DNA of 64,000 bases from Geosiphon pyriformis uo1 (lineage: Eukaryota > Fungi > Glomeromycota): assembly GCA_016748015.1 (NCBI GenBank), contig JAAOMT010000708.1:343968-407967 (forward strand), written 5' to 3'. The translations under genes were made by a program, and so were the position numbers. A model generated the notes under the pieces. It did no database searches, was not told where the DNA came from, and saw nothing but the letters and a program-made list of their open reading frames with translations. Each line of letters opens with the position of its first letter. Within the stretch, counting starts at the first letter, position 1. Below, one piece after another: positions 992-33,800 of the stretch.

Positions 992-1711
992 ATGACTATT
1001 TCTCAAAACATTCAACAATTATCCCAAAAACTAATGTTAGCTTTAAAAACAATACCTGAATTATCCATTACTATTACTGGAAACCACATAAATTATACTC
1101 AAACAGAAGTAGTTACAAATTTAGCCCCAAATTTACGAAAATATCACCCATATAAAAAGAACACAAGAAGTTATACTGGAATTTACCTGCCAGAACTTTT
1201 AAAGCTTGCTTTAAGAGAAAACCTAATGCTCACTCCGATTAGTATCCCACCAAATACTACAAGTCAACAAAAACTTCAACTGTGTCTCAATGAGGAAAAC
1301 ACTGAATATTCTCCAATCTATAGATATTTTCACATTGGAAAAACACTCTACGAACGGAAACTGGAACTTACAACAGCAAACCTCACAAAAAAAGCTATTC
1401 AGAAACAACTCCACAACAAATTCAAGACAACAGCTGAATCAACAAACAGTCACTATAGGCTTAGAGCTGCTCTTAGACTTTATGACTTATTCCACACCTG
1501 TAAAAACGTACTACAAAACCCAATTTTTCAACCTTTGAAGATTCAATACATTGGAAAGCTTACAGAACTGAAATTTCAACAATTTTCAGACCAAATTTCT
1601 TCAATAATTTTGGATTATTATCTGGAAATAACAGACAGTACTTGGACTTCAATGGAGCTCAGTCTTGAGGAGGAGGTTATGTTACCAGACAAAATTAGAG
1701 ATATCATTTAG
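992..1711 (+). CDS. ORF3 of E1, ~239 aa protein of unknown function (intact; runs through the PPT into the LTR)
   Basis: Open ORF 983..1711 with ATG at 992; homologous by eye to ORF3 of E2-E7. Confidence 0.75.
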   Translation: MTISQNIQQLSQKLMLALKTIPELSITITGNHINYTQTEVVTNLAPNLRKYHPYKKNTRSYTGIYLPELLKLALRENLMLTPISIPPNTTSQQKLQLCLNEENTEYSPIYRYFHIGKTLYERKLELTTANLTKKAIQKQLHNKFKTTAESTNSHYRLRAALRLYDLFHTCKNVLQNPIFQPLKIQYIGKLTELKFQQFSDQISSIILDYYLEITDSTWTSMELSLEEEVMLPDKIRDII

Positions 1712-2999: not shown

Positions 3000-4428
3000 T
3001 ATCTGTTACAGCCAGAACAATTGAAACAGATGAACATAAGAAATCTAGACCCACTTCAACAGATGCAACTAAAAATGTTACTCAATAATTTCAATGACAT
3101 CTTTGCCAGTGAAAACAAATTTGGCAGAACTGATATTATCCAGCATCAGATCAAGACTGGAGATGCAATGCCAATCAAACAGTGAGCATATAGGGTATCA
3201 TCAGCCAGCCATGAAATCATTTGTTAAGAGATCAACCAAATGCTTGACAATGGGTTAATTCAGTCATCAATGAGCCTATGGTTGTCACCAGTAGTACTCA
3301 TTTATAAGAAGAATGGAAAAATCCGATTTTGTGTAGACTACAAGAAACTCAATGGTGTAACTCATGGAGACAGCTATCCAACTTCACAAATACAAAAACT
3401 ATTTAACGCTTTTGGTGGAAACAAATGGTTTTCAATGTTAGACTTGGATAGTAAGTACTGGCAAGTAGCCATAGATCCAGCCAACAAAGAAAAAATAGCG
3501 ATCACTACAAAAGAGGGAAACTTTGAGTTTGAAGTTATGTCATTTGGCTTAACCAATGCTCCAGTTATATTCCAATGGCTAATGGAAATCATGTATACCG
3601 GCTTATTGTGGAAATCAGTAGTTGTATACTTGAATGACACCAATGTGTTCTCAAAAACATTTGATGATCATCTATGTTATTTCTAACAAGTGTTCGAAAG
3701 ACTACGATAAACAGAATTAAAATTGAATGCAACAAAGTGTTTTTTTGGCAAAACAGAACTAAAATTCTTGGGACACATAGTTAGCAAAGACTGCATAAAA
3801 ACAGATCCAGAGAAAATAGAGATAGTAAAGAACTTTCCAATACCAACCAACGTAACTGAGCTGAAATCATTCTTGGGATTTGCAAACTATTATAGACACT
3901 TTATAAAAAACTTTTTAAAGATAGCACAACCACTCAATAATCTTCAAACCAAAATGCAAAGTATGAATGGACTAAACCCAGCAAGAAGCATTTGACATCT
4001 TAAGAAAAAAGCTTATTCAAGCTCCAGTATTGATCTATCCAGATCATAGTAAACCATTCATTATCACCACTAATGTATTAGGTTAAGCATTGGGAGCAGT
4101 ACTATCTCAGAGAGGATTAGATGGAAGAGAACATCCAGTCACATATGCCAACTGAGGTTTGACTCCAGCTGAAAAGAACTATAGAACACCAGAATTAGAA
4201 CATCTAGTAATCTATTGGGCAGTTATGAAATAGAAAGAATACTTGAGTCAAAAGTTTGAGGTGTATACAGATCACAAAGAATTGACATCACTCCAAAAAC
4301 AAAAATTTGGAGATGGAAGACAGTCAAGATGGAAAATGGCTCTTTTGATATACACTTATACTATACATTATAAAAAGGGAAAAGACAATGGAAATGCTAA
4401 CAGTTTGTTGCGAATGAGACAAATCTAA
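3000..4428 (+). pseudogene. Reverse transcriptase and RNase H (E2)
   Basis: ORF fragments 3240..3686, 3723..3995, 4243..4428; ends NANSLLRMRQI*. Confidence 0.85.
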
Positions 4429-4489
4429 GAACATTTCAACCCAAAAATATAACAAAACCAAAACAATACTCACGAAAATATAACAAAAA

Positions 4490-5872
4490 ATGAACACACA
4501 AAAATATCAACAACTTCAACATTATATAAATACTCAATAGTTTAAAGAGAAATTATCTCAACCAGAACAAAAAAGAATCAAACAACAATCCAAATATTTT
4601 ATCACTCACCAAAATATACTTTATTGGAAAAATAAAAAAGATTCAGATCAACCAACCAAAGTAATTACAAAACCAGAAAAGGAGATGATACTATTCAATA
4701 TGCATTCAGACCCAACTGCAGGACATTTTTATAAAGAAGCAACCATAGAAAGAACCAGAAAGAGATACTATTAACCATCAATGTATTCAGACATCATCCA
4801 ATATGTGCAAAATTGTGATGCTTGTCAAAGAAGAGAAAGAACAAGACCCAGCAAACCATTGAGACCAATCAAAGTGGGACAACCATTTGACCGTATTGAA
4901 ATCAATTTAGTCAGACCATTAACAATTACCAACAGAGGCAACAGATATATTGCAGTAGCCATAAACTATCTTACTAAATGGCCAGAAGCCAAAGCAATTC
5001 AAAAAGTGGATACAGAATCCGTTGCCAAATTTGTCCATCAAGATTTGATTTGTCAACATAGATGTTCAAAAGAACTATTATCAAACTAAGGAACCTATTT
5101 TGTGAATAGAACATTAGCAGAACTAAGCCAAAGATTCGGAATTAAGAGACTACTATCATCACCATACCATCTACAAACCAATGAATTAGTTGAAAGATTT
5201 AATAGAACATTGTATGAAGCAATAGCAAAACTCAGCCAAAAAAACCAGGACAAATGGGATTTGTTTATACCATCAGTATTATTTGTTTATTGAACAATGA
5301 AGCAAGACACCACACAAGCAACATCATTTAAATTAATATACAGTAGAACAGCAATATTACCAGTTGAGATAGAGGTTAACACATATCTAACTAAATCAAT
5401 AACAGAAAAGAATTTTCAAGAAATATTGTTAAGAAAAACATATAACTTAATGGAAACATTGGAAAACAAACAAAGAAGAGCAGCTGATAATATACAAAAG
5501 TCACAAGAGAAACAGAAAGAAAGACATAATAATTAATTACCAGACAAACCAGTTAAATTCAAGATTGGAGACAAAATACTTTTACATTGTACCAAAGTAG
5601 AAAAACAATAGAGTGGAAAATTCGACCCCAAATGGGATGAACCATTTCACATAGAAAAAATTCTAGGGAATAGAGCTTACAAATTAAGACTGGATAACAA
5701 AATCTTAACCAAAGCAGCACATAGAGATCGACTGAAACCATATCACAACATCACACTACCATCCACCAGTAATATTCTACAATTAGGAGTACAGAAGATA
5801 CTAGTCTAACCAGAGAAAATTCTACAAGATCTGAAACCAATCATCATCATTAACAACAACACATTAAATTAA
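4490..5872 (+). pseudogene. Stand-alone integrase ORF (E2)
   Basis: Own ATG (MNTQKYQQLQHY); HSDPTAGH..CDAC zinc motif, YLTKWPEA, GPF-like region. Confidence 0.8.
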
Positions 5873-5926
5873 TCTATCAAAAGAATATATAAAAACATGG
5901 TAGACGTGACAAGAAATAGCAGAAAA

Positions 5927-6556
5927 ATGGATATTACAGATAACATCTACTCATTAGCATAACAACTTTTTCAATTGATTCAACATCAAGAGATGAAAAT
6001 TATAATTAATCAACAAACCATCTGATATCAAGACACTAGAAAGACATTACCACATAAAACACAGAAGAAAACAGAAAATACCATTGACAAAATCATTGTG
6101 AAAATAAAGTTAGCAATAAAAGAGTTGACAAAAGAGTTACTATACCAAAAGTTAACTAAAAAAACTTGGAATTGGTAGATACAACAATTTCCAAGAAACT
6201 ATTGTTATTTTTACTTGGAACAACACGTGAATATCCAGAATCTATATATGGATAAAACAAAGCAATTATTTGACACAAGAATACTACAACAATTAGAACA
6301 TTTTGTGAGAAAGAACAACTTATTCACACAGGTCTGAGCCATATACCAAATACACACAGCATTTCAGGATCAACCAGAAATCTTACTTAACAAAGCAATA
6401 AATACGGTTACCAGTAATCAATTAGTAAAAATCACCAATGCTCAATTTGAAGAATTACAGACTCAAATAACACAAGTAATTCTCGAAAATGAAATTCAGA
6501 AAATACTTCAAGAAGAGAAATTAACAGAGTTAGATTTTGACAGAGCTCAAAATTAA
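5927..6556 (+). pseudogene. ORF3 of E2 (stops at former Q/R/W codons)
   Basis: MDITDNIYSLA.QLFQLI...YCYFYL...AIYQIHTAF...KITNAQFEEL; stop just before the PPT. Confidence 0.75.
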
Positions 6557-6569
6557 AAGGAGAGAATAA

Positions 6570-7439
6570 TGTTATTTATAGAAATATAAGAAATATATAT
6601 TAGCATAGTTATTAATTAATCAGAAGTAGACATAGTAAAATGTGGAATTCCAGTATTCTTCTCAGGAATTACAGGATTCCAGGAATTACAGAATTCTCAC
6701 AAGAAATTGCAGAATTCCAGAATTCCAGGATTTTTCTCAAAGGAATTGCAGGATTCCAGAAATTTCAGGATTCCTGTTGTGAAGAATTGAGAAATTGAGG
6801 AATCTCAATTATGTATATATAGCAGTAGGATTAGAAGCTAAAAAGACAGACCTCTCAGTTTAGATTTTATCTAGACAACTTTCCAAACCACAAATAAATA
6901 ACTGTTTGTTATCTCAAATCTGCTGCCATTATCAACACTTCATGTTGATAGTAATTGATACTTAACCATACTGGAACAATAGCTCTTGATCACAGCTATT
7001 GACAGAATACTAACTTGCAAATTGCCTTGGCTTATTTCTTTTCTTTCTTTATTTTCTTTTCTTTTCTTTATTTCTTCTTTGATTTTATTGTTGTTTACTA
7101 ACTCTATTGAGGATTAATGCACGGAGTACTAACATCTGAATAAACATAACTGGTAAAAGACCCAGAAATAAGGGTAGAACACTCAATTGAGGATAGCTTA
7201 CCAGAAGGAATACTGGCCATCAAGTTGAGAAAGAAATTGACAAAACTGCGGTTTTGGAAAGCTATGAATAAAACTATTACCATTAAATCTCTGTTCATTA
7301 TACAAAGAACTCAACCAAACCCTTTGAATACAGACTTTTTAGACACCAATCTTCAGATCACTATCAACTGCAATTAGATTTGAGCACCAAGTTATGGGTT
7401 TATTATTTAATTTAACACCAGAAATAGTCACCTGTAACA
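6570..7439 (+). repeat. 3' LTR of E2 (family B, GGAATTCC-type U3)
   Basis: TGTTA...TGTAACA, TATA (TGTATATATAG), R/U5 shared with other B-type LTRs. Confidence 0.9.
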
Positions 7440-7521
7440 ATGACACCAATGTCTTCTCTGAAACGTTTGACAATCATTTGCTTCATCTGTAACAAGTCTT
7501 CAAATGCTTTTGTAGTACTGG

Positions 7522-8344
7522 TATTACTCATAGAAAAAGAAAACAGATATAGAAAAATAGGAGGCCAATAGAAGAATAGTAGTTAGCACATGAGCATATT
7601 GCTCAGCAATATGGAGCAATGTCAGAAATCACAGCACATCACTCAGCAATGTGGAGCAATGTTAAGAAAATACAGCACATTGCTTGAGAAATTATAGCAC
7701 ATTGCTTGGAAATGTGAGCAATTTTATAGAATCCAAATTATGTATATATAGCGGTAGCATTAAAAGTAGAAAAGACAGACCTCTCAGTTTAGATTTGATC
7801 TAAGCAATCTTCCATTCACAAATATCAATAAATAATTATTCACTATTTTAATCTACTCTCCACTATCAACACTTCATGTTAATAGTAAGTGATACTTAAC
7901 CACATGAAAACAATAGCTCTTGATTATAGCTATTAATGGGATATTAACTTGCAATTGCTTTCATTTATTTCTTTATTTTTTTCTTTTATTTTCTTTGTTT
8001 TGTCATTTCATTAGTTTTACTAAACTGATTAAAAATTAAATACTGAGTTATTGACATCAAGGATAGCCTGGTAAAAGACCCCAAAGAAAGGATATAGGAA
8101 TTGAGAATTTAAGGATAGTTTACCAGAAGGACATCTCTGTCAAGATTACCAGCCATCATGCTGAGAAAGAAATTTGATAGAATTGCGATTCCGGGAGGCT
8201 ATGGAAAAGACAACACTTGAATCTCTGTTCATTATACAAAGAACTCCACAACAAAACCTTCAGATATTGACACCAGAATACCAACCCAGCACCAAGTTAC
8301 AGATTTGTTATTTGACTTAAGACTCCAAATAATCATCTGTAACA
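7522..8344 (+). repeat. 5' LTR of E4
   Basis: Direct repeat of 16742-17563. Confidence 0.95.
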
Positions 8345-8346
8345 TT

Positions 8347-8363
8347 TGGTGCTTCCTGTGAGG
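8347..8363 (+). other. tRNA primer-binding site TGGTGCTTCCTGTGAGG (resembles the 3' end of elongator Met or Ile(UAU) tRNA; identity uncertain)
   Basis: Starts TGG after a 2-nt spacer following the LTR end; similar site in E7 at ~40894. Confidence 0.8.
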
Positions 8364-8407
8364 TATAATCCTACAGAAAACCAGCACCAACTACACTCAT
8401 CCCAAAA

Positions 8408-11400
8408 GTGGCAGAATCAAAAAGTATAGGAGCAAACCATTTAGGATTCGCAAAATCCTTATTTTAACATTACTGTTAACACTTAGGATTAAACCAAAAT
8501 CATATATTAGCAAAATCAGCCTTTGATTTTTATGTCAATGAGAGAATTGCATATTTGTTAGGAACACCAGTAAATACTGAATCAGCAAGAGAAACTTTTT
8601 ACCATGAATTAATCCAAAACACCAGCCTACCAACAAATTATAATTTTACATTCATCATTACTGAGATTAATAAAAAAATTAAACATCACACACAACAAAG
8701 ATATCCAATCACTTATGCTAGTAAAGGCAAAGAAAAATTACAAATACTAGCAGTGACACCAAAACAAATACAACCACTCACTTGAAAGAAAACCAGAGTT
8801 GAATCACCAACAAATTCATCATACTACTATACACCTGGAAGTGCCATCAACATCACATCAACAGGTGTGTTCACATTACACATGACATCAATCTTTGGAC
8901 AATTTCTATTTCAGAGTAAACAAAAGAAAGAAGATCTTTTAGGACCATACAGCATGTATTTTGAAAAATTTAAGTCCCGATCACCAATGCCATCAGGACT
9001 TCGATCTCCACCACTCCAACCAGATTTCAGAACCACGAGTCCCTGAAAAATAATGAAATCGGAAGAAGAACAAGAAAAAAAGGAAGAAGAATCTGAAGAT
9101 CAAAAATTTACTTACCAGAATCTGATCTCAGAGAACCCGAACATTAAAACTCCAAATTTTCAGACTTAGTAAAATCTAAATTTAGAAAATCCAGAAATTG
9201 AAACTCTGAATTTTCAAACACAGCCAAATCAGAATGACCGAAACCCCAACTTAATTAATCAACAAAACTTACCTCTTGGAATCATTATTAATTAGCCACT
9301 AGCCAAACCCATATAACAGCCACCCCAACAACCACTTCAACAAATTCATCAGCTGTCTGTATCGCAACAACAACAACAAATGGCATATGTACCAATCATA
9401 AAGCTCGATAAATTCACTGGCAAAGAAGATGACACCCAAGTCTGGCTGAATGATGTAGCTAAAGCAATTACAGCCAATAACTGGGATGATGATAGAGCCA
9501 TGCAAGCAATCCTCTATTTTCTTCAAGACATTGCCAATGCATGGTACCAAAGTCTTACCACCAAACCCCAAAATTTTAATGAATTCAAAACCGAATTCTT
9601 GAGGTATTTTAGTAATAATAATAGCATCAACAAGTTAACCAACACCTTCACCACAATCAAACAAGAGAAAACTGAAGCAGTTACCACTTACTTGCGACAG
9701 TTCTACAGGAATCTATGCCAAATTCAAGCAATCCAAGCTGACTATTTTACAGCACCACAAATTCTAAACCAGTTTATCTGTGGGTTGTGTAGTAGCATCC
9801 TCCAATGCATACACCCAATACACCCACAAACTCTCCAGAACACAATTACCAATGCATGAGATTTCGAAGCAGCTAAACTAGAAGCCAATTATGCTCAAAC
9901 TGTAAATCTGGTCATAAATGGATTATCTGAATTGAATTCCAAATTGAAACAATTCAGTGATTCAATTAATCAGAAATTGAAAAGATACTTAGCTAACAAT
10001 TGCACAATATATCAACCACCACAATGACACAATAATTCTGGAAACACAGATTGTTTTCAGAATCAGTCACATCCAACATCCTTGACCAATCAACAGTGGC
10101 AGCAGGAAACACGTATTTGCCACTATTGTGGTAGACAAGAACATTTGCAATTTGAATGTCAAAAAAGAATAAGTGACCAGAGATCAGTTAATCAGTATTG
10201 AAACTTTGATTGCCGACTACAAACTCAGAATTACATCAGTAATCAATCAAACCCAGCTCTATATCAACAAGATTACTTACCTATGATGCAGCTGATATAT
10301 CAAACACCAATGACGCAGCAATTATACTTACCTTCAGTCTATCAGCCTCCAACAGCAATTTATCAACTGCAGTTCTAACCCAATTATCAGCTGCAGTCTC
10401 AGGTAAATTATCCATTCCAACAACATCAAACACTGCCACAGAACTTACCTCAAAACAGAACTCAAAGACCAAGATTAACACAGCAAAGCTGGAGATCATT
10501 GATGGCAGTCCATTAACTGATCCCCAGTTCCATAGCACAACTATCAAGATCTCGACCATGGAATTCAGGCACTGGATATGCCCAAAACCCAAATTCCCAA
10601 AACTATTTAAGTTTTCTGGTTACCCCAAAAAACGCCCCACCCAATAATCCGGAAACCAACCAAAAACAATCACTCACCAACAACATACCTTCAGCCACCA
10701 TCACTAACAACGAATCATTAGCAGTGATCTTTCCATTTGAACTTGAAGAAATTATACCAGTCCCATTATTCAGTGGAGCCACTCTTAACACCAAACCAAT
10801 CACCACTATGTACACTGATGCCAAAATCAATAGCCACTTCATCAAACTGATTCTAAATAGTGGATCAGCTGGCAGCATTATTACAAAGCAACTCATGAAC
10901 CAATTAGGTCACTAAGTTGATCACGCTGCCAGTGCCAGAATCATAACTGCTGATGGAACAACCAAAACTCCCATTGGTGAGATTGATGACTTCCCTATAG
11001 AAGTTAACGGCATCATTGTATCAATCAAAGTATTAGTCATAGAAGCCACCCAATACCAAGCACTTGTTAGTAATGATTAGTTATCTAAAACCAACACATT
11101 GCTTGATTGGAATATGCAGGAGCTTCAAATCAGCCAGAATGGATAATACACACATGTACCAGCCATGTATGGCCACTTTATAACCACCAACTTGACAGCA
11201 CCACTCATAGAGTTCAAAGAAAAAAAAAAATCTACCTGAGAAACTTATCAAGTATTCTGGGCTAACAAAGAACACAACAAGCTACTGCCAGTACCTTTGT
11301 GGGACAACAATAACAGGAAAGAAAAGAAAAGAGAAGAACTTATCTGGAACACTGACCAAAACTGAGAAACCTATAATGATCAGAATGAATTATCAACAAT

Positions 11401-14400
11401 CTGGAAATGGGAAGAGAATAAAATAAAAGAAAAAGAGAAAGAGAAAAAAAAAAATTCTATACCAACCCCTATTCACCCTACATATACATACACAACACCA
11501 CAATCAAGCTATCATTGTCCAAAACTCATATGTGTCAATTGTGACAAGAAATTGTTGTCAATGGGCGCATGTTATGGCGACAATGAGAAATACTCAACAG
11601 TAACCAAATTCTATTGCCACATGTGTGTCATAAAACACTTTGGATGTCCAAAACAAAAAGGGAAATGGGACAATAAATCATGCTTGGCTTGTGGTGAAAC
11701 TCTTCTGGATGAAAGAAAGTGAAACGACATTCCTGGGCAAAGAGGAACGTGTGACAAATTGTGTCAATACATGATTCTTATAAGTGACTGGGTAAGAAAA
11801 AAAATGTCCATAGACACTGCCTGAAGATGAGCTGTCAAATGTCTAGACAGATGTTCACACGATAATGATGAAATCTGGTAAATAGCACTTGCCAAAATCG
11901 AAGGAGCAATCCCAGAAGAAATAAAAACAATCAAAGACAACTCACCTGAACCCATAGAACTTGACTGAAATTCAGAACCAGTCATAAATCTACTAGATCC
12001 AAAACAATTTCATAAATACTACCAGAAATTAGCACCCACTAGAAAGGAATAAGAGCAATGGTTGGAAGAAATCAATACTTGACTATGTGACTATTGTTTA
12101 ATTCTCTGTGACTTCCAATATTGTAATGAGTGTGACCTTATTTACAATTCACCACCACGCATGATCTACACAATTCCAAAGGAAAAAGAACCAATCAGCA
12201 GCTGCACATTGGAATTGGAATCAGTTTCCAATCCTGATTTAAACTCCGACAACAATGATGACGAAAATAATGATTCCAGTTCTGTTCAAAATGGCAATAA
12301 CAATAACAACAATTCCAACTCAGATTCAAACTCCAATTCAAATTACGAACAATATATTGTGCTCTCTAATCTCACCAAAGAGCAGAAACTAAAATGTATT
12401 ATGCCAGAACACATGCATGATACCAATGCAGGGTTTGATCTAAAATATCCAAAAAAAGATTCCATCAAATTAGAACCATATTCGTGCACTTGTATTGATC
12501 TGAAAATAGCACTGGAAATTCTAACAACAACAATGGTTCAACTAGCATCCAAGAGTAGTTTAGTGAAAAAAAGAATTAACATTAGAGAAGAAATAATTGA
12601 TGCAGGATATGTAGGAAATATTATTGCTATGCTACAAAATGATTCAGAAAAGGCATATACCATAGATCCAAATGAAAAGATAACACAGGCAATATTCCTA
12701 CCTCTGGTGAAAATAGCTCAATTAGTGTCAGTAAGAAACAAGAAGGAATTAGGGATTACAGCTAGAGGGATATAGGGATTTAGATCAATGAGTAGAATAG
12801 ATATACCAGTCAATATAGCAAAGAAAGAAATTGTTGACAAAAGAGAAATTATCTCAACCCATCAAGCAATTTTCATTCCACCATATGACTAGTATATGTT
12901 AGCCATAAAAAAAGAAGTAAAGAATCAAGCTCAATTGTTTAAAGCAGAAGCCACCATTTGTGAATCAGAAGAGATTGGACTCACCAATCTCTATATCTCA
13001 GCCAACAGCCCCAAAAATATTAAAATTCCCATTCATAACACAACTAGAAACATCATTAAAATACCAAAGGAAACTATCATTGGATATTTAACCACTGAAG
13101 TTGAGGATCAACCACCAAACCACATTTCAGATTTTCCACAACTGTATAGATATGTGGACATCACATCACAAATCATCTACAGACAAAGTAAATGCTATCT
13201 GCTTCAACCAGAACAATTGGAACAGATAAACATGAAAAATTTAGACTCACTCCAACAGATGCAACTAAAGATGTTACTCAGCAACTTTAATGACATTTTT
13301 GCTAGTAAAAATAAATTTGGCCACACCAACATCATCCAGCATCAAATCAAAACTGGAGATGCAATGCCAATTAAACAAAGAGCATACAGAATACCACCAG
13401 CTAGCCATAAAATCATTCATCAAGAAATCAATCAGATGCTTAACAATAGGCTAATTCAGCCATCAATGAGTTCATGGTTGTCATTAGTGGTACTAGTCCA
13501 GAAGAAGAATGGAAAAATTTGCTTTTGTATAAATTACCAGAAATTAAATAGAGTAACCAAAAGAGACAGCTACCCAACTCTAAAGATTCAAGAACTATTC
13601 AACGCTTTTGGAGAAAACAAATGGTTCTCAACATTGGATCTAGATAGTGACTACTGGCAAGTAGCCATGGATCCAGCTGACAAAAAAAAGACCACATTTA
13701 CAACAAGAGAAAAGAATTTCAAATTTGAAGTCATGCCATTTGGCTTGATGAACATTCCAACAACATTCCAACAGCTCATGAAAATTGTATATACTGGATT
13801 ACTATGGAAATCAGTAGTCATATACTTAGACAACACCAATATATTCTCAAAAACATTTAATGATCATCTGCATCACCTCTAGCAGGTGTTTAAAAGACTA
13901 AGAAAAGCCAGATTGAAACTAAATGCAACAAAGTGTTTCTTTGGAAAAACTGAACTCAAGTTTTTGGAACATGTTGTAAGCAAAAATAGTATCAAAACAA
14001 ATCCAGATAAGATTGCAATAATAAAAAACTTTTTAGTACCAACAAACTTGCCAGAACTAAGGGCATTTTTGGGATTCGTAGACTATTATCACCACTTCAT
14101 CAAGAACTTTTCCAAACTAGCTCAGCCACTTCACCAGCTACAAACTAAGAATGTAAAATATGATGGACTAAAGCTTAACAAAAAGCATTCGACACATTGA
14201 GAAAAAAGCTTATTCAAGCTTCAGTATTAATGTATTCAAACCACAGCAAACCATTTATCATCACTACGGATGCATCAGGTCAAGCATTGGGAGCAGTACT
14301 ATCACAAAAAGGACCAGATGGAAGAAAAAATCCAGTAGCTTATGCCAGTAGAAGCTTAAGTCCAGCTGAAAAAAACTATGGAACTCCAGCACTGGAACAC

Positions 14401-16032: not shown

Positions 16033-16091
16033 AATCAAACAATCAGAAAGTATATAAAGACACAGTATACATGACAAAAGCAATCAAGAAA

Positions 16092-16727
16092 ATGGAAATA
16101 CCAGATTATATTCACACTATAGCTCAACAACTGTTTCAGGCCTTAAGTTAACAACAGTTAGACATGGAAATTATCATTAACAACCAAACAATTTGCTATT
16201 GAAACACTAAAAAAAAGACAAAGAACACACCATATTAGCGGGTACCAAAAAATGATAAAAACTGGTCAGATAACATAATAGAAAAAGTAAAGAACATATT
16301 TGGGAAAATACTTATTATAGCACCAACAGAAGAACTTACAAAAAAGAATTAGAAGCAATGGACAGAACAACTTCCAATATCATACTGTTACTACCAGTTA
16401 GGTCGAAAGTTGAATATTCAGGAGTTGTATATCAACAAATTCAAGAGAATATTTAACCAAGACATAATACAACAAATTGAAGAATTTATTGGAAAGAAAA
16501 CAAATTCAACACTACATGTTAGAACAATATACTGACTACACAACATATTTTGAAACTATTCAGAAATACTGTTACACTCTGACATGGAAATCATAACCAT
16601 TAACCAATGGAGAAGAATAAACAATACACAAGTAAAAAACATGAGAAACAGAGTCAAACAAACAATACTTGAAAAAAAAGTATTAGAATTAATTCAAAAC
16701 AAAGATTTTGACAGAGCTCAATATTAA
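16092..16727 (+). pseudogene. ORF3 of E4
   Basis: MEIPDYIHTIAQQLFQAL...TPY...YCYYQLGRKLNIQELY...RTIY*LHNIF; TATATAAA 41 nt upstream. Confidence 0.75.
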
Positions 16728-16741
16728 AAAGGAGGAGATAA

Positions 16742-17563
16742 TATTACTCATAGAAAAAGAAAACAAATATAGAAAAATAGAAGACCAATAGGAGAATAGT
16801 AGTTAGCACGTGAGCACATTGCTCAGCAATGTGGAGCAATGTCAGAAATCACAGCATATCACTCAACAATGTGGAGCAATGTTAAGAAAATACAGCACAT
16901 TGCTTGAGAAATTATAGCACATTGCTTGGGAATATGAGCAATTTTATAAAACCCAAATTATGTATATATAGTGGTAGCATTAGAAGTAAAAAAGACAGAC
17001 CTCTTAGTTTAGATTTGATCTAAGCAACCTTTTATTTACAAATATCAATAAATAATTATTTATCATCTTAATCTACTTTCTACTATCAACATGAAATGTT
17101 GATAGTAAGTGATACTTAACCACACGAGAACAATAGCTCTTGATTACAGCTATTGATGGGATACTAACTTACAATTGCTTTTATTTATTTCTTTATTTTT
17201 TTCTTTTATTTTCTTTGTTTTGTCATTTTGTTGGTTTTACTAAACTGATTAAAAATTAAGTGCTGAGTTATTAACGTCAAGGATAGTCTGGTAAAAGACT
17301 CCAAAGGAAGGGTATAGAAATTGAGAATTTAAGGATAGCTTACTAGAAGGACATTTCTGTCAAGATTACCAGCCACCATGCTGAGAAAGAAATTTGATAG
17401 AATTGCTATTCTGGGAGGCTATGGAAAAGACAACACTTGAATCTCTGTTCATTATACAAAGGACTCTACAAAAAATTTTCAGATATCAACACCAAAATAC
17501 CAACCCAGCACCAAGTTACAGATTTGTTATTTGACTTGAGACCCCCAATAATCATCTGTAACA
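16742..17563 (+). repeat. 3' LTR of E4
   Basis: Follows PPT AAAAGGAGGAGA; repeat of 7522-8344. Confidence 0.95.
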
Positions 17564-19740: not shown

Positions 19741-20478
19741 ATAGATCTTTTAGATCAAATTTTAAAATTATCTAAACAATTATTTGAAACAATTCAAAAA
19801 TTGACATCTCAAATAGAAATTATAATTGATAGAAAAAAAATAAGATATAGAGATAAGGAGAAAAAAGGGATGGGCAAAAGTTCAACTAGAATTAACCATT
19901 CCCATTCCTACACCCTGCCCAAAAAAAGAATTTTACAAAAAAGAATTAATTTGTCTCGGGCGGGACTTGAAGAAAGTGTGGAGGAATGAGAATTATTTTA
20001 TAAAAGAAGATACTTGGTCCCCAAGCTAGAAGAAATAAAAGAAGTTTTAGCTTGTGGGACCAAACTCCCCAAAACAGGGGAGTGGACACCTGACAATGCC
20101 CAGGAATAGAAAAAAAGACTTCCTCCAGCATATTAGTTCTACAAAATTGGTGAACAACTAAATTTGAAAACACTATATGGAAACCTCAGCCAGAAAACTT
20201 TCAACAAAGAAGCAATGCAACAAGTAGAAAAATTTGTAGGAAGAAGCAACCTGACCCTATACTACAAAGCAGCATACTGATTATATGCTGCTTTCCAACA
20301 TTGTCCAAATGTATTGTTGTATGGATCTATAAAAATGATAACAGTTAACAACATAGAACAAATTACTAATCGACAGTTTGAAGACTTACAAAAAACAATA
20401 CTTGATGCAACCATTGAATATTACATAAACAAAGACATAGAAACAGATACATACAATTTCATAGGAGCTTAATACTAA
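19741..20478 (+). pseudogene. ORF3 of E3
   Basis: (M)DLLDQILKLSKQLFETI...FYKIGEQLNLKTLY...KAAY*LYAAF...QITNRQFEDL. Confidence 0.72.
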
Positions 20479-24920: not shown

Positions 24921-25858
24921 TGTTATCAGTAAAATTTTAGCTATTAATTAGGTTGAAATTATCCTCATAATTCCTATTATTAATTAGCATATATTATTAT
25001 CATTTTAATTAATAGTATTTAATCAAATTAGCAATTATTATCATTTAATCAATAATCCGATTTGTACCATAGAAATTAAGATGATCAAATTACACAATAC
25101 TTTGAACCATTTAACATAATCAAAATTCGCCGAAATTAATGAAAATTGGCCGAAATAATTAATAGTTCAGTGAAATAACTTGTAGTTTGCTGAAATGTAT
25201 TTTTAGTTTACTAAAATTATAGCAAAAAGAAAAGTTCAAGTTCAAAGACTAGTATTACAACAAATTGTATAAAAAAAGAGCTATTTTCTTTAAAAAAATA
25301 TATCTTCTCATAGTATCTTATCATAGTATTTTACTTTAGATATCTTAATTAGAACAAATCACCTTTTACATATCTCAAATAAAAATTAAATATTTGAAAA
25401 CCAAATTCTTTAAATTATTATACTTGAAATTCCCTCAAACACAACTAACATTTTGAAATTGATTAGCTACCAATTTCAGTAATCTGTTAATAACTTCAGA
25501 CTTAGATAAAGAACGTTTCTCTTGATAAAATTCTATTTTTTTTACATTTTTTTTCTTTTTTTATCATAATCATTAAGGTAGCCTACAGACAAGATTCCTG
25601 TAAAAGAGTTAACTTTTACAGCAAAGTAACTACACATTTTTGTAAGCTTCTAGACAAGCAATTCCTGGAAAAAAGTTAATATTTACTACTGGCATAGAAT
25701 TGGCCATTCTACTTATAAGCTTAGCAGTTCAAATTATAAGAGATAATTTGAAAATAAATTCAGTTATTGGAGGTTCAACTGCTTTCAGAAAACGTGAAAT
25801 TAACAACAGACAAACATTAACAACATTCAAAAAAAGAGACCAAAAACCTTTAATAACA
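24921..25858 (+). mobile_element. Solo LTR S2 (family A) inside integrase of E5
   Basis: Similar to 1680-2661; flanks TCAG/CCAG. Confidence 0.9.
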
Positions 25859-28800
25859 CCAGTTATCAGATAAACCAATCGAATTTAGGATTGAAAACAA
25901 AGTATTCTTATATTATATCAAAGAAAAAAAACAATAGAATAGAAAATTTGACTCCAAATAAAACAGACTATTTCACATTAAAAAAATTTTAAAAAATAGA
26001 GTTTATAAATTAAGATAAAACAACAAAATCTTAGCTAAAGCAACACATAAAAATTAACTAAAATCATATTACAATATAGCATTATTATTTATCAATAATA
26101 CTTCATAATTAAAAATACAATAAATACTAATCCAACCAAATAAGATTTCATAAGATCTAAAACTAATCATAATCATTAACACAAACATGTCAAATTAATT
26201 TACAAAAACAGTATATAAAAAACCAATAGATATAACAAAAGCAAACAAAAAGATAGAAATTACTGACAATATTTACTCACTTAAACAACAACTATTACAA
26301 CTTATTTAACATCAAAAATTAAGTCTAAAAGTTATCATTAACAAACAAACTATCCAATATAAAAACAAAAAAATAATTCAAAAATTCCAAAAAAAAGAAC
26401 AATATCTCAGATATTATATTTCTAAAAATCCAGTAAACAAAATAATAGGAAAAGTGGAAAAAATATTGGAAATTTCAAAGATAGTAATACCAAATAAAAA
26501 AATAATACTAAAAAATTAGAACCAATAAACACAACAAATTCCCAAAAACTTTTGTTATTATTAGTTAGAACAAAAACTGAATATTTAAAACTTATATACA
26601 GATAAGACCAAAAGAATATTTAATATAACTATATTACAACAAATTAAACAAGTTATAAAAAAAACAATTTATTCACATATGCAAAAGCCATCTACTAACT
26701 ACAAATAAGATTTTAAGACTGACCAAAAATATTACTACATCCAATAATAAATACAGTAACTATTAATCAATTGGAAAAATTAACTAATACTTAATTCAAT
26801 AAATTGCAAACCAAAATTACAAAAGCAATTCTTGAGAAAGAAGTTATAAAGCTAATTCAAGAGAGAGATTTAAGAAATTTAAGAGATTTTAACAAAGCTT
26901 CATATTAAAAAGAAAGAATAATATTATTTATAAAAATTAGAAATTATAGACAGTAAAAAAAAAATTCCAGAATTCTTAAAAAATTGCAGGATTTCAAGAT
27001 TTTTTTCAAGAAATTGCAGAATACCAGAATTTTTTTTAAAAGAATTAAAAAATTTCAAAGAATCTTATATAACATAAATTATGCATATATATAAAAAGTT
27101 TTAGAAGCAGAAAAAATATATTTAATAGAGTTTAAAACAATAATACCTCTTTTTTCAAAAGATAGTTTTCTATAATTTAAAATAAAATTACATTAATATT
27201 AATAAAATATTCAATTATCATTAAATCCATATTATTATTACTTGATTAAAAAATTATTAATCTATTTTACACTATCAACATAGAGTGTTGATAGAATCTA
27301 ATACTTAATTACATTGAACCATAGCTCTTAATTACAGTTATTGACAGGATACTAATTTTTTTTTTTTTGTTTCATTTTTTTGTTGTTTACCAATTGATTA
27401 AAAAAATCAAATACAGAGTATTTGATATTAAGAATAGTCTGGTAAAAAACCTGAAAACAAAAGTAGAAAACTTAAAAATAGCTTATCAAAAGAGCATAAT
27501 TGCCAAAAAAAAAATTCACAGAAGAAATTATCAATTAAATCTCTGTTTATTATATAAAAGCCTCAACCAAAATCTTTAAAAATTATCATCATTTTTAGCT
27601 ATTAAACATCAAGTTATAGGTTTATTATTTGTTCTAACATCTTAAATAATTATTTGTAATAGTGTTTTGGTATTTTTTCTATAATAATTATTCTAGTGAT
27701 AGCTATATAATTTACTTAATAACCTAATTGATTCATAAACTGATTTGTAATTATGTTGTCTGTTAATCTATTGTTAAGTATTAATTTAATGTTTATTTAT
27801 CTTACTTTATTATTAATATATATTATCATTATTATTAAAGATTTTTGATCTCTTTTTCTAAATGTTGTTGTTATTGTTTTGCTGTTTTAATTCCTAATTA
27901 TTGAAAACTATTAAATCTTTAATAACTGAATTTATTTTCAAATTATCTTTTATAATTTAAACTGCTAAGCTTATAAATAAAATAACCAATTTTGTGTTAG
28001 TTATTTGTATAATTACTTTGTAGTAAAAGTTAATTCTTTCTTAAAAATTGTTTATCTAAAAGTTTATTAAAAATATGTAGTTATTTTGCTATGAAAGTTA
28101 ATTTTTTTTCAGAAATTGTTCATCTAAAAGTTCACTAAAAATATGTAGTTACTTTACTGTGAAAGTTAACTTTTCTACAGAAATTTTGTCTATAGACTAT
28201 CCTAATATATATAAAAAGAAAAGTAAAAGAAAATATAAAAAATATAAAAAAAAATTTTATTAAAAAAATTATTTTTTGTTCAGATTTGAAGTAATTAATA
28301 AATTACTGAAATTGGTAGTTAATTAATTTTAAAATATTAGTTGAATTTTAAAAAATTCAAGTATAATAGTTAAAAAATTTGTGTTTTTAAAGTATTTTAA
28401 TTTTTATTAAGTTGTAAATATAAATAAAATAATTTTGAATAAGATTATTATTTTAAGATAAAATATATTTTTTCAAAAAGAAAAGCTTTTTTTTTTAAAT
28501 TTATTGTAATACTAGTTTTTAAACTTATACTTTTTTTTTGCTAGTATTTTAATAAATTAAAAGTATATTTTGGTAAACTATAAGTTGTTTCTTTATACTA
28601 TGAATTATTTTGGTAAATTAGTGAATTATTTTGCAAAATTCTATAAATTTTGGTAAATTCTTGACTATTATAAAGTTTAATATATTGTATAATTTGATTA
28701 TCACAATTTGTGTATTATATAAATTGAGTTATTAATTAAATAGTAGTATTTAATAATTTAATTAAATAATAAGTGATAATTAATATAATGATATTATATG

Positions 28801-30848
28801 TTAATTAATAATAGGAATTATAAAATAATTTTTGTTACTTAATGGCTAAAATTCTATTAGTAACATAATTTTTTTCTTAAAACTAAGCTCCATTAAAGTC
28901 TAAATACTATCCATAATTTCTAGATAATAATCTAAAGTAATTTGGTTTGAAAATTGTTGAAATTTCAGTTTTGTAAATTTGCCAATATATTGAATTTTTA
29001 TTGTTTAAAATATTGAATTTTGTAGAACATTTTCACAAGTATTGAACAAATTATAAAGTTTAAAAACTGTTTTAAGTTTGTAATAAGTATTTATTGATCT
29101 AGCTGTTATCTTAAATTCATTGTAGATTTGTTTTTGTATAGCTTCAGAAATGAGATTGATTGCTTCAAATTCCAGTTTTCATTAATATAGTGTTTTTTTA
29201 ATTTAAAAGTATTAATAAATAAGAGTATATTTACTGTTTTTATTAAGATATATTTTAAGTTTTTGTTGTATTGTGGTATTTAGAAAAATATTTATAGAAT
29301 TAAACAGTAAGTTTTCTTTTAAAGCTTGTTTTAAAAATTTTGGTAAGTGATTTCTAGAATAATTTCTTGTATTTTTTCTATAAAAGTGATAATTTTAAGA
29401 ATTATTTATTATTAAAGCTATAGTTTTTTTTTAAATGTAATTAATTTAACTTCTATTAATTATTATAGATAAATTAAAAAGTGTTTTCAAAGTTAATATT
29501 AATTTTTAGAATATTTGTTAAATGTTTTGGTAAATAAATATTATAAAATTAAAAAAAAATAATAAAATTTGGTAAAAAATAAAAAAAAATTATTTTTGAA
29601 TATAAAAGTTTTTTTTATATATATTTTTAATTTGGTTATTTTTTTTGTAGTTATTTTAAAAAAATTACTAATATAAATAATTTAAATATTCAGATTTAGT
29701 TATTATTTTATTACAACTATTGATTCTAAATTTTAAAGAATATTTTCAAGATTAATTAAGAAGAATGTATACTAATTTGTGAAATTAATAATTTAAGATT
29801 GATTCTAAAGTAATAATATTTTAATTAATCTTTATGTACAACTTTTGCTAAAATTTCGTCATTAAATTTTAACTTATATAATTCATTGCTTAGAACTTTA
29901 TAAATATAAAATATTCTATTTTATTTGTGATTAAATTTTCTATTTTACTATTTTTCAGCTTTAATTCTGTATAAAAAAACTTTATTTTCAATTTTAAATT
30001 TATTAAAAATTTATTGTCATGTTATTTTTTTGTTAAACTTAGGAGTGTTTAATATAAGTAATTGCAATTTGTTATTTTTTTTTAACATACTAAGCAGAAT
30101 ATAAGCTTTTTGTTAAAATGTTTCTTAAAAGTTCTTCTCTGTAATCAGTTGTATTAAATATGTTTCTACTATAAAATTAATTAGTAATATTGCTGTTTTT
30201 CTATAGTAAAGTCAAATAATAAGATAATAATAATAATCTTTTAATGTTAAATTATTCACAAATTTTTTGTATTAAATTATTTACAAAATGTGTTTCTTGA
30301 TTGAATAAAAATTTGATTGAACATTCATGTTTGCAGATAATATCTTTATAGATGAAATTTGCTATTAATTTTGTATCTATTCTTTGAATGGCTCTAATTT
30401 TAAACCATTTGGTAAAATAATCTACTGTAATTATAATATAATAGTTTTTTTGAATTGTGATAAATAATGATTTAACTAAATTAATTTCTATTTTGTTAAA
30501 GAGTTGTTTAACTTTAATTAAATTTAAAGATTTAGTAAGACAAATTTCTTTTTTTTTAATAATTATTATATAATTCTACATATTATTAAATTTTTTTTGT
30601 ATGTAAATCCAAAAATAATGTTCTAATATTCTTTAAATTATACTATTTTTTTCTAAATATGCTAAAAATAAGTCTGTGTACATATTGTAAAAAATGGTTT
30701 TTTTTTATTTTTTTATTTTTTTATTTTATTGCTTAACGAGTAAGGTCCAAACACTACCTAGCACTATACATCATGGAATTAATCTAAACTAGGCGTGAAT
30801 CATGCACTTTCTACACATAACCAGCCACTCGGGCCGATCAGAACAACA

Positions 30849-33800
30849 CTACACAGCTATATGAACTGATACTAATTCACCTATACCTGAAAAGAACAAG
30901 CAAGTCTTGCGAAAACCAAAATAAACACCTAAAGCACTAGTAATGCCAAGTAACCTAACCACTCCTGCAGAGAACCTCGAAGCCAAACCATGAACTGAAA
31001 TGACAGCTGAACTATCTAGTGGGATCAGTTCATTCTTCTCCATATACGCACGATGCTTAGCATGAATCGACCAGACATCCTTCCTGAAAGCAAGACCAAG
31101 AGAGCGCACAAACTTGACAATTTCCAAAACAGCAATCTTGGGGTCGTGAAAGATGGAAACAGCCTCGCTAAACTATCCATTGAAAACAAAGTCCTTAAAA
31201 AGAGCCATAGACACAGAGGAATCAGAAACACTGGATGACAACAGCTGCAATATATCTGAGGGGGAGTGAGAGGAGCCAGAAAGCGCCTTCCAAGACCCTA
31301 CATAAGAATTCAACAACTGGTGCTGAACAGACTCGTCAACCTTGCAAGAGAACACATGATCCGACACCTCCACCTCACCACAATACAAGCACAACACGCT
31401 AGGATAACGTTTATTATAGAGGCGCTTCCGAACAGCAACCGGCAGCCGATGGTGCAAAGACTTCATAAAATAAGTACACACACTGGACGAATACCTGCTG
31501 GTAAATCCTGCAGCCATGTGCAAATCAGGATGCCACACCAACGACGAACGGGGCCAATCAACCTTAGAAGACAAGCTGCCAACCAAAACCCCAGAACCAA
31601 AACCAATCTCCCACCACACACGACAAATATCACGAACAAAATGCTTCGAATTTTCAGAAACAACATCACCATCAGCTGCCAAGAAGTGCTCACTCAAGCA
31701 AGGGGGAAGATACCAATTGGAGAGAGAAGCGGCACCAGCAATCGCATCAGCACGCTTATTTCCCAAAACACCAGAATGACCTTTCACCTTGCGAAAGCTA
31801 ACCCTTAACTTCTTACTGTGAATTACATTGACAATATGATGACGTTTGATCCAACACTGATTACAAAAATTGGGACACACCAGATCTAACTCCGACCTGC
31901 AAGCATCCAACGCCGATTGACTATCTGAGAACAAACAAACAGAGCTTGACGGAGGAACACACTCCAGAGCTAAAGCAACAGCCTGCAATTCCGCCAAAGT
32001 AGACGACATCAAACTTAATACCCTTATGTCCAAACCCAAACCAATGTCCTCAAAAAAAACAGCAGCACCAGCTCTACAGCCAACCATGCCAAGACCACTA
32101 AGAGATCCATCCGTATACACTGACAGGCTGCTAGCACCGGTCACCAAGAGACGATCATGAATAGACACAAATTCACCAGACTTAAGAATGTTTGAAGGAT
32201 TACCATCCCCCAAAACTAGAGATTGATCACGAGAAGATCTCACACTATTGAGAAACAAAACAGAATGCTTGAACCACTCAGGAACTGGGCCACGGGAGTC
32301 CAATCTCTTCCACTGCTTGAAAGTGTACCAATCATAAACAGCACCATGACGGTCACGAAGTTGATTCACAAAGGCAATACCATACCACTGAAGAGAAGGG
32401 AGAAACTTAAGAAATCTTGACTCGCCCAGAACCTCAGACATAGGCACTCTACCATGAGACCGAAAAGAACTAACCAAAGAGCCACTCAGAGACACATTGC
32501 AATCGACAAGAACATGAACCATGCCTGCCAGAAAGTTATTAGAAGCACTGATACAAATACGAACAGGAGAACACAATAGATGAACAGGGCACCAACACAG
32601 AACTTGCAAGTCATAAGACCTGTGGAAAAACAAACGACCCAAGATACCACCAGAGTTCGCAAAACTGACAAGGGAAGCAATCTTGCTTTCAGATTGAACT
32701 TGAGAAAATGACTTCAAACCATAAAACGAAGGGTGGTAAACCACATTATTGGAGAAATCGAGTGGCAAACCAGACTTGAGCTTCAAACCTTTACAAATCA
32801 GAGCATCCCACTTCCCGCACACACCAACAGGAATAAAACTGAACTGAGTTCTATAGCTGACTATCGGATGCAGAACTGCCGACACCAAATACAAAAACTG
32901 CTTATCTGAGACCGCCTTCCTCAACACCAGATTGGTAAAAAAGCGAATGTCCAAATGCGCCTTAGCCAAGCTAGGCTTCAAAAGACCCTCAGTTGACAGA
33001 AAAATGCCCAGATATCGGTGAGATTCGCTCTTTTTGGCAATAGAAATGGGCGAACCACTGATAAAAAGGAAAAGACTGCTGACTCTGCTATTGATAGGAA
33101 TGGCTACTGTTTTGTCGTTGTTAATAGAAATCTCATTGATAAAAAAAATTCACTAGCAACATCGAGAATATGTTGAGTAGCCATCTGACTGCTACCAACC
33201 CAAATCGTATCATCAACAAAAGCACCAGCGGCAAAAAAAGAAGAAAACCCAGCCTGAGATTCGGAACGACCATTCTTGGAAACAAAGTGAGAGTTCAACC
33301 TATACCCACATACACTCTTCTGTCTTTTGACTTCACACAAAAGAGGATCATAAAATATGCGCCAGAGAAGAGGAGAGAAGACCTCTCCCTGGTCCAAACC
33401 ATCGTGCACACGGTAACCGTTTGTCAGTCCAAAATCAGTCATGACTTGATTGGTACGATCCCTATGAATACCACCAAAAAACCGAATAAATTTGCTACAC
33501 ATCTTAATCCTAACCAAACTTTTCTCGAGATGCTCCCAGCCAACCAAGTCATACGCCTTTCGCATGTCCTACAGAACCAGCCATAGCTCCCTGTTTTTTT
33601 CCAAAGCATTTTCGACCACTGAACCAATTGCAAAAATAGGGGACTGGGTTGTTATACCCTTCAAAACTGAGAAATTAGCCCTTCGAAGCACATCAAAAGT
33701 ACTGCATGCCAAAGAAATCCTGTCCGAAAATATCTTGGAAAGAACCTTGCGAGCTGTTTTGATCAAGGCAATAGGATGTGTGTTCGTTAAAACACCTTTC

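Follow-up and report, generated by a model that had tools for sequence, protein, structure and literature searches.

What is the gene that follows the integrase (IN) in the retrotransposons of Geosiphon pyriformis? The window analysed here, a stretch of 64,000 nucleotides from this glomeromycotan fungus (contig JAAOMT010000708.1, positions 343,968 to 407,967 of the forward strand), was found by self-comparison to be a nest of decayed, related copies of Ty3/gypsy retrotransposons with long terminal repeats (LTRs). A third open reading frame (ORF3) lies after the integrase in these copies. Our conclusion is that ORF3 is an accessory gene (an 'additional ORF') belonging to a dUTPase-bearing Ty3/gypsy clade that has expanded in Geosiphon, and that it has been under selection, is specific to this lineage and is not an envelope gene. 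Judging from its pattern of substitution, it is highly probable that ORF3 is a real, selected gene. The whole of our preferred explanation, in which the product would also work as a nuclear adaptor, is given a probability of roughly 0.45.

An earlier model reading of the bare letters (the sequence-only reading) had placed ORF3 in all seven elements of the window. tblastn with natural intact ORF3 proteins as queries (those of locus L005, P0151, P0146 and E1) recovered a homologous region after the integrase in 7/7 copies, at 992-1708, 5933-6553, 16098-16721, 19768-20469, 26547-26833, 49523-49762 and, on the minus strand, 29529-28861 (E-values 1e-160 to 1e-5). The coordinates given by that reading for E1, E2, E4 and E3 proved exact. 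Homology therefore holds for all seven, but only E1 is open, and the other six copies have 4 to 24 in-frame stops.

992 to 1711, plus strand: E1 ORF3, 239 codons and a stop, the window's sole open copy; listed in GenBank as the 'hypothetical protein' gene model P0182 and sharing 92% identity with Geosiphon KAG9298349.1
5927 to 6556, plus strand: E2 ORF3 pseudogene (E2/E4 type), 4 internal stops and no frameshift; tblastn with L005 ORF3, E 6e-25
16092 to 16727, plus strand: E4 ORF3 pseudogene, 6 internal stops, directly 5' of the polypurine tract (PPT; 16728-16740) and 3' LTR (16742-17563); tblastn E 5e-31
19741 to 20478, plus strand: E3 ORF3 pseudogene (E3 type) with ATA in place of the start codon and 4 internal stops; E 1e-56 with P0151, i-Evalue 1e-6 with the E1-type hidden Markov model (HMM)
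26256 to 26900, plus strand: E5 ORF3 remnant, many stops and one frameshift; tblastn E 7e-10
49252 to 49887, plus strand: E6 ORF3 remnant, 24 internal stops; tblastn E 1e-8
28849 to 29547, minus strand: E1b, the seventh copy, an E1-type ORF3 interrupted by 11 internal stops, with a GC content of about 15%; 54% of amino acids identical to those of E1, E1-type HMM 7e-93

The reading frame is otherwise kept in these copies, and their decay is nearly all base substitution, chiefly C-to-T and G-to-A. In E1b, 368 of 665 G/C positions (55%) were changed in this way with little dependence on the neighbouring base. The in-frame stops of the window copies are the result of this decay. A ciliate-type genetic code was rejected as their source: TGA-only ORFs do not cover pol, and all three stop codons occur.

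Selection on ORF3 was measured mainly between the E1/L001 subfamily and the L002 subfamily, whose ORF3 proteins share 66-67% of their amino acids. The method used for nonsynonymous (dN) and synonymous (dS) change, Nei-Gojobori (NG86), is crude and the alignment is AT-rich and partly saturated; the direction of the result is unambiguous. ORF3 gave a dN of 0.20, a dS of 1.04 and a dN/dS of 0.19, and the adjacent integrase of the same subfamilies gave 0.095, 0.55-0.66 and 0.15-0.17. As a control, the ORF3 alignment was read in the two other frames, where the ratio rose to 0.65 and 1.3-1.4. Differences at codon positions 1, 2 and 3 numbered 53, 35 and 89, and there were no indels across 687 nt of ORF3, whereas 33 of the 146 columns of the upstream spacer had gaps. 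Pairs of decayed E2/E4-type copies gave a dN/dS of 0.18-0.32, and an environmental pair (L003 and L007) gave a pN/pS, the ratio of uncorrected proportions, of 0.26. Purifying selection during subfamily divergence suggests that ORF3 is required for the element's own propagation.

The protein nonetheless changes quickly, as had been noticed from the letters. Over the same pairs ORF3 was 37% identical and the C-terminal half of the integrase 71-75%, and at the protein level ORF3 changes 2-3 times faster than integrase, in keeping with a dN of 0.20 vs 0.095. The pN of its segments was 0.13 (residues 1-37), 0.41 (the linker, 38-64), 0.25 (65-107) and 0.11-0.12 (108-212), and no segment exceeded a pN/pS of about 0.7.

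Are the divergent types one family? The E1-type HMM alone detected E1b (7e-93) and E3 (1e-6); E2, E4, E5 and E6 were not significant, with weak alignments that were collinear. When the E1-type profile was run against 1.84 billion representative proteins it found 35 matches in all. Among them were the intact E2/E4-type proteins P0149 (2e-10) and P0150 (3e-10), matched across the whole ORF3 part, the E3-type proteins P0151 (3e-5) and P0152 (7e-4), and the environmental proteins P0146 (3e-15) and P0148 (2e-12). A profile of the divergent types matched 11 proteins. The intact ORF3 of L005 (10001-10669, 222 residues) links every type by BLASTP at 1e-13 to 1e-38, and protein homology holds at 22-30% identity, where DNA alignment fails. 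The single layout with four shared motifs that the sequence-only reading had described is visible in our alignments A2 and A4. None of the results that would have counted against the sequence-only reading appeared: the ORF3s align significantly, their dN/dS is far below 1, and no envelope, structural or host protein matches them.

From the spliced GenBank models P0149, P0150 and P0169, alignments and searches took only the first-exon parts (residues 1-200 to 1-228), which correspond to the plain ORF. GenBank models of the L005 subtype (259 residues, at least six near-identical copies; 10001-11467) splice ORF3 across the PPT into the LTR. These models look mis-annotated, the plain ORF having 222 residues and ending 10 nt before the LTR.

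The expectation that ORF3 is lineage-specific was borne out. The E1 ORF3 protein had 198 matches, and the 120 listed are all Geosiphon entries named 'hypothetical protein G9A89_...' with 63-92% identity; the Geosiphon genome annotation holds more than 190 open copies. All named profile matches belong to Geosiphon, and the rest come from an ENA contig (L003), JGI contigs (L004, L007) and short fragments. The profile searches of the 1.84 billion representatives found no homologue in the proteome of any other organism. One metagenome scan gave no match, and a second returned nothing beyond the JGI contig already known and a single 1.3-kb relative. No paralogue outside an element was seen, every homologue with fetched context lying between IN and the 3' LTR, and our literature search found no description of this gene.

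The position of ORF3 is equally constant. In the window copies, L001, L002, L003 and L005 it always follows IN and either adjoins the PPT and LTR or overlaps them, and in L004 IN is followed by ORF3. Across the seven window copies and five fetched loci it is a sense-strand frame distinct from pol and located between pol and the 3' LTR. The layout at E1, all on the plus strand, is as follows.

1 to 873: 3' part of E1 pol (C-terminal half of integrase), with 4 in-frame stops and the pol stop codon at 871-873; aligns without gaps to the integrase of L001 and L002
874 to 991: A-rich, non-coding pol-ORF3 spacer; 65% identity and 33 gap columns against L002
1667 to 1676: polypurine tract GAGGAGGAGG, inside E1 ORF3 over the Glu-Glu-Glu codons of the C-terminal tail; identical tract in L001, L002 and L003
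1680 to 2661: E1 3' LTR, which begins TGTTACC; the L001 5' LTR begins identically, and a solo copy lies at 24921-25849

E1 ORF3 runs through the PPT, and its last 10 codons and stop lie in the first 32 nt of the 3' LTR. The same overlap occurs in L001, L002 and L003, and P0148 (L004) has the same C-terminal tail. E2/E4- and E3-type ORF3s end right before the PPT and have no such tail. The claim that ORF3 sits between integrase and PPT is therefore correct for the E2/E4 type but not for the E1 type, which contains the PPT. Cis-acting DNA signals shape the conserved tail, since this part of ORF3 overlaps the PPT and the start of the LTR; the tail of E1-type and environmental elements is only a by-product of reading through the PPT and LTR end.

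The pol-ORF3 spacer varies from 70 to about 890 nt. The frame of ORF3 relative to pol is not conserved either, being the same in E2 and different in E1 and E4, so fusion of ORF3 to pol by read-through or frameshifting is unlikely. In E1 a T12 run followed by CAAG (975-985) ends 8 nt before the ATG and is a candidate 3' splice site; E1-type copies have a pyrimidine run and AG a few bases 5' of the ATG. In 5/5 E2/E4-type copies the TATA-like motif TATATAAA occurs about 45 nt 5' of the ORF3 start (regions 5880-5926, 16045-16091, 49205-49251 and 26215-26255 of the window, and about 12470-12520 on the minus strand of L002). Either signal could mark a separate ORF3 message, and we treat both as leads only.

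What kind of protein does ORF3 encode? Our best explanation takes it to be soluble and non-enzymatic, about 210-240 residues long and built of three parts. AlphaFold2, given a 22-sequence alignment of all subtypes, returned a mean confidence score (pLDDT) of 63; residues of about 80-210 scored 78-92 and were all helices, and residues 24-79, which include a hairpin assigned by DSSP at 24-37, scored below 50. With E1-type sequences alone the score was 41 and the model unusable. The predicted layout is a small conserved N-terminal module (helix and beta-hairpin), a fast, disordered, basic linker and a helical domain of about 130 residues. The helical nature proposed from the letters thus agrees with the prediction for the C-terminal two-thirds.

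No Pfam family matched any of the 22 ORF3 members, and the PDB sequence search gave no significant match; matches to FtsQ (E 0.05-0.3) were rejected as not significant, the predicted ORF3 fold being helical. Foldseek with the ORF3 model found nothing significant among PDB structures (best E 0.36) or the viral models of BFVD (best E 0.056, TM 0.18). The earlier statement that ORF3 is not an envelope (env) gene stood: in five subtypes there is no signal peptide, fusion-peptide-like stretch or membrane segment, the highest 19-residue Kyte-Doolittle mean being 0.8-1.3 against the usual threshold of 1.6. Each protein has 1-3 cysteines and 25-28 lysines plus arginines.

A nuclear location had also been proposed, and it can be followed at the level of a motif only. 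The linkers of 5/5 subtypes (E1, P0146, P0148, P0150, P0151) have R/K/H-x(2-5)-P-Y in the same place, at residues of about 43-56, with Y54 nearly invariant in alignments A4 and A5 and a net charge of +3 to +7 over 35 residues. This resembles the proline-tyrosine nuclear localization signal (PY-NLS) of transportin/Kap104 cargoes, for which sequence criteria are listed in PMC6627039: the C-terminal R/K/H-x(2-5)-P-Y is there, and the segment is positively charged and predicted to be disordered. Upstream of P-Y, where a PY-NLS would have a basic or hydrophobic epitope, basic clusters are clear in P0146, P0148 and P0150 and weak in E1-type proteins. PY-NLS is a motif class and not a protein family, and the signal in ORF3 is putative.

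How might such a protein serve its element? ORF3 would have a message of its own, arising by splicing or from an internal promoter. By virtue of its P-Y motif the product would enter the nucleus along the transportin/Kap104 pathway, and there the helical domain would be an adaptor for the element nucleoprotein, that is, the pre-integration complex or integrase, or for element RNA. As a coenocytic fungus, Geosiphon could plausibly require active nuclear import of such a complex, and we assume that its nuclear envelope stays closed during division. The nuclear adaptor role is a tentative proposal drawn from sequence features, to which we give rather worse than even odds. Several observations weigh against our preferred explanation as a whole. 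dS is higher in ORF3 than in the adjacent IN (1.0 vs 0.6), which makes the NG86 ratios for ORF3 rough. The candidate expression signals differ between subtypes, a putative splice acceptor in the E1 type vs a TATA-like motif in the E2/E4 type, and AT-rich DNA has many motifs of this kind. The P-Y motif is short, its N-terminal basic/hydrophobic epitope is weak in E1-type proteins, and its exact form occurs in 51 of 109 annotated copies (89 of 109 when P may be S or L), in copies that are decaying. Finally, Pfam and Foldseek searches of PDB and BFVD found no similarity of ORF3 to any import, DNA-binding or RNA-binding protein. The more specific roles suggested earlier (transactivator, anti-silencing factor, targeting factor) were not upheld, as no similarity of ORF3 to any protein of known function was found. 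The sequence-only reading saw a real feature and took it about as far as the letters permit; its functional labels are conjectural. From sequence features we infer only that a two-module adaptor may act in the nucleus on nucleoprotein or RNA.

Three explanations of ORF3 can be set aside as effectively excluded. If there were no protein, the E1 frame would be open by chance and conservation would reflect cis-acting RNA or DNA signals 5' of the PPT. The tail is indeed conserved through its overlap with the PPT and LTR end, and pS is lower there (0.41), but the codon-position test refutes this idea: the third-position excess, a dN/dS of 0.19 in the annotated frame only and 687 nt free of indels are joined by the more than 190 open copies in the genome and by protein homology where DNA no longer aligns. 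A degenerate envelope remnant, also effectively refuted and the least probable of all, would explain why ORF3 occupies the env position of errantiviruses and retroviruses, and small env-remnant ORF3s have been described in bdelloid elements (PMC5408684). However, the five subtypes lack the signal peptide, membrane segment and fusion-peptide-like stretch, no viral glycoprotein in BFVD or PDB matches in structure, and cysteines are few. The additional ORFs of other retrotransposons are often captured from the host (PMC5408684), and ORF3 might be a captured or domesticated host gene merely beside the elements. This is very improbable given that every homologue with fetched context is inside an element and that neither a homologue in other proteomes nor a non-element paralogue was seen, although an ancient capture from an unsampled source is possible.

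Two further explanations accept a selected protein and differ on what it does. ORF3 could be a cytoplasmic structural or chaperone part of the virus-like particle, such as a second Gag-like or nucleic-acid-binding protein, and no nuclear factor. A helical, non-enzymatic, lysine/arginine-rich protein under the kind of constraint that fits any replication-required protein would suit this role, but ORF3 has no zinc knuckles and no capsid-like fold by Foldseek, and the conserved P-Y island in a disordered linker would be left unexplained. It is also unrelated to the elements' own Gag (hhalign E 0.099, probability 0.6%), on which ground a duplicated Gag was rejected. We regard a particle component as unlikely. 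Less likely again is a counter-defence factor against host silencing (RNAi, DNA methylation or C-to-T hypermutation) whose rapid evolution would reflect an arms race. These elements are clearly hypermutated by their host, and the rapid change of ORF3 relative to integrase and its narrow, lineage-specific distribution are as such a factor would have them. Against it, the overall dN/dS is 0.19-0.3 with no segment above a pN/pS of about 0.7, the fast part is the disordered linker and not the surface of the folded domain, and there is no homology to known suppressors. Our preferred explanation, an accessory gene whose product may be a nuclear adaptor, has a bolder form that we consider improbable. 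Here the elements would be 'complex' retrotransposons that express ORF3 (with a further gene, ORF-X, in the environmental lineage) from a subgenomic message, and ORF3 would be a shuttling nuclear adaptor of new fold for import of the pre-integration complex or export of unspliced RNA. If true, this would be a fungal, env-less parallel to retroviral accessory proteins of the Vpr/Rev type.

Where does ORF3 stand among known genes? Env and env-like ORF3s, as in errantiviruses (gypsy) and the plant Athila/Tat elements, occupy the same position and are usually expressed from a spliced subgenomic message, and in the E1 type of ORF3 a T run and AG lie just 5' of the ATG. Geosiphon ORF3 differs in having no signal peptide, anchor or glycoprotein fold and in its size (about 230 residues vs 450-600). 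Complex retroviruses have accessory or regulatory genes, such as HIV nef, foamy virus tas/bet and MMTV sag, located 3' of their structural genes and overlapping U3. Like them, ORF3 is a small, non-structural 3' gene that, in the E1 type, runs over the PPT into the 3' LTR, and spliced or internal-promoter expression is possible. There is no similarity of sequence or fold, and those are vertebrate viruses as opposed to an env-less fungal retrotransposon. The comparison with Rev, Rex or Tas is a positional analogy only, no homology having been found.

The brtn gene of the Botrytis cinerea gypsy element Boty/BcGypsy1 is reportedly antisense, unlike the sense-strand ORF3, which we set apart from it by description only. 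Like ORF3, brtn is an extra gene of unknown function in a fungal gypsy element; it is mentioned in bioRxiv 10.1101/2021.04.13.439636. The ORF3s of the bdelloid rotifer elements Vesta, Juno and TelKA are sense third ORFs between pol and the 3' LTR, family-specific, and include non-envelope types; these elements also share the dUTPase domain in pol (PMC5408684). The bdelloid proteins can be recognised as enzymes (GDSL esterase, DEDDy exonuclease), as membrane proteins or as coiled coils, and Geosiphon ORF3 matches none of these, and the host is a rotifer rather than a glomeromycotan fungus. Fungal dUTPase-bearing Ty3/gypsy elements have been described from Postia, Phanerochaete and Tuber (PMC2864245), and a figure legend in that paper marks an 'add. 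ORF' of unknown function in some of them, known here by that description only. The Geosiphon elements likewise are fungal gypsy elements with gag, dUTPase, PR, RT, RNase H and IN (PR, protease; RT, reverse transcriptase). The nearest known class is therefore the 'additional ORF' of LTR retrotransposons (PMC5408684, PMC2864245), in which ORF3 is a new family present in GenBank as unnamed hypothetical proteins.

The elements that carry ORF3 are Ty3/gypsy (Metaviridae) in gene order, Gag being followed by a Pol ordered PR, RT, RNase H, IN, and they have direct LTRs with a PPT right before the 3' LTR. Pfam matches in the window ORF fragments (chiefly E4) and the fetched loci cover Gag (Retrotrans_gag / Ty3_capsid), dUTPase, aspartic protease, RVT_1, RT_RNaseH, Integrase_H2C2 and rve. 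An SH3-like domain was matched in the ORF fragments, SH3_Tf2-1 was matched on an L001 ORF homologous to the E1 integrase part, and no chromodomain was among the Pfam matches. E4 is the best-preserved window copy, its LTRs (7522-8344 and 16742-17563) being 91.7% identical. LTR pairs of the fetched loci are 96% (L001), 88% (L002), 91% (L003) and 95-97% (L005) identical. L005 is young and, besides its intact ORF3, has long ORFs for gag, dUTPase and RT-RNase H; an apparent deletion of its IN core was rejected, as it is an assembly gap of Ns. The dUTPase domain is in pol of all ORF3-bearing elements (window 12161-12775; L001 5386-6753; L005 6250-7467; L003 within 3851-7045), and in L001 this region holds a perfect 259-nt tandem duplication (6136-6394 and 6415-6673). 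dUTPase in fungal gypsy elements has already been reported for basidiomycetes and Tuber (PMC2864245), as has a striking LTR expansion for Geosiphonaceae (PMC11952901).

The environmental locus L003 is a complete element with gag, PR, dUTPase, RT, RNase H, IN and ORF3, and it has a 136-codon ORF between IN and ORF3. This ORF-X (L003 9588-9998; same region of L007) is a second post-pol gene right before ORF3 in the environmental lineage. Its pN/pS between the L003 and L007 copies is 0.14, and it has no Pfam match. A weak hhalign resemblance to the helical part of ORF3 was not significant (E 0.19), and the two are treated as unrelated. All 15 in-frame stops of L003 gag-pol (3025-9298) are TGA, which the ENA gene caller read through as sense. 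A code in which TGA means Trp was rejected: 4/5 integrase TGA codons fall where relatives have Arg or other non-Trp residues, and TGG codons are still present. The TGA stops of L003 are likely methylation-type decay, probably CGA to TGA at CpG, with no variant genetic code.

Decay in the window has features of its own. Across E1b (28074-30217), rates of change were 50% at CpA, 43% at CpT, 52% at CpC and 65% at CpG, unlike classic CpA-biased repeat-induced point mutation. Near context-free C-to-T and G-to-A hypermutation also occurs at 24-30 kb and 38-60 kb (12-22% GC), in an AT-rich window whose GC ranges over 12-43%. E1 has 4 stops in its integrase part and none in ORF3, and ORF3 has 1 Trp codon vs about 7 Trp positions in that integrase part. 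G-to-A stops arise in large part at Trp codons, so the intactness of E1 ORF3 need not mean selection after insertion. The solo LTR at 24921-25849 belongs to the E1-type family and is inserted within the E5 integrase region. On the minus strand, 30700-37400 is GC-rich (about 43%) and is a seemingly young non-LTR (LINE-like) element, with an RT fragment (33104-33565), an RNase H ORF (31173-32981) and long ORFs at 33569-34933 and 35957-37297 that have no Pfam match.

Extra ORFs are common in LTR retrotransposons and almost never understood. ORF3 is a further example of this known phenomenon and not a new kind of system, and the finding is solid but moderate. Searches of Pfam, PDB, BFVD and the 1.84 billion representatives show ORF3 to be without known relatives or a fold match beyond its own family. 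It is unusually tractable, with hundreds of natural copies in one genome, clear purifying selection and a confident helical domain, and the conserved P-Y motif gives a cheap, falsifiable prediction, namely nuclear import by transportin/Kap104. Should ORF3 be an orphan additional ORF and nothing more, the practical value is smaller, and the gene models are to be flagged as transposon-derived. If the nuclear adaptor explanation is true, it would give a function to several hundred Geosiphon 'hypothetical protein' entries that are transposon genes, and it would show how, in an early-diverging fungus that is coenocytic, a retrotransposon with neither chromodomain nor envelope gets into the nucleus or controls its expression.

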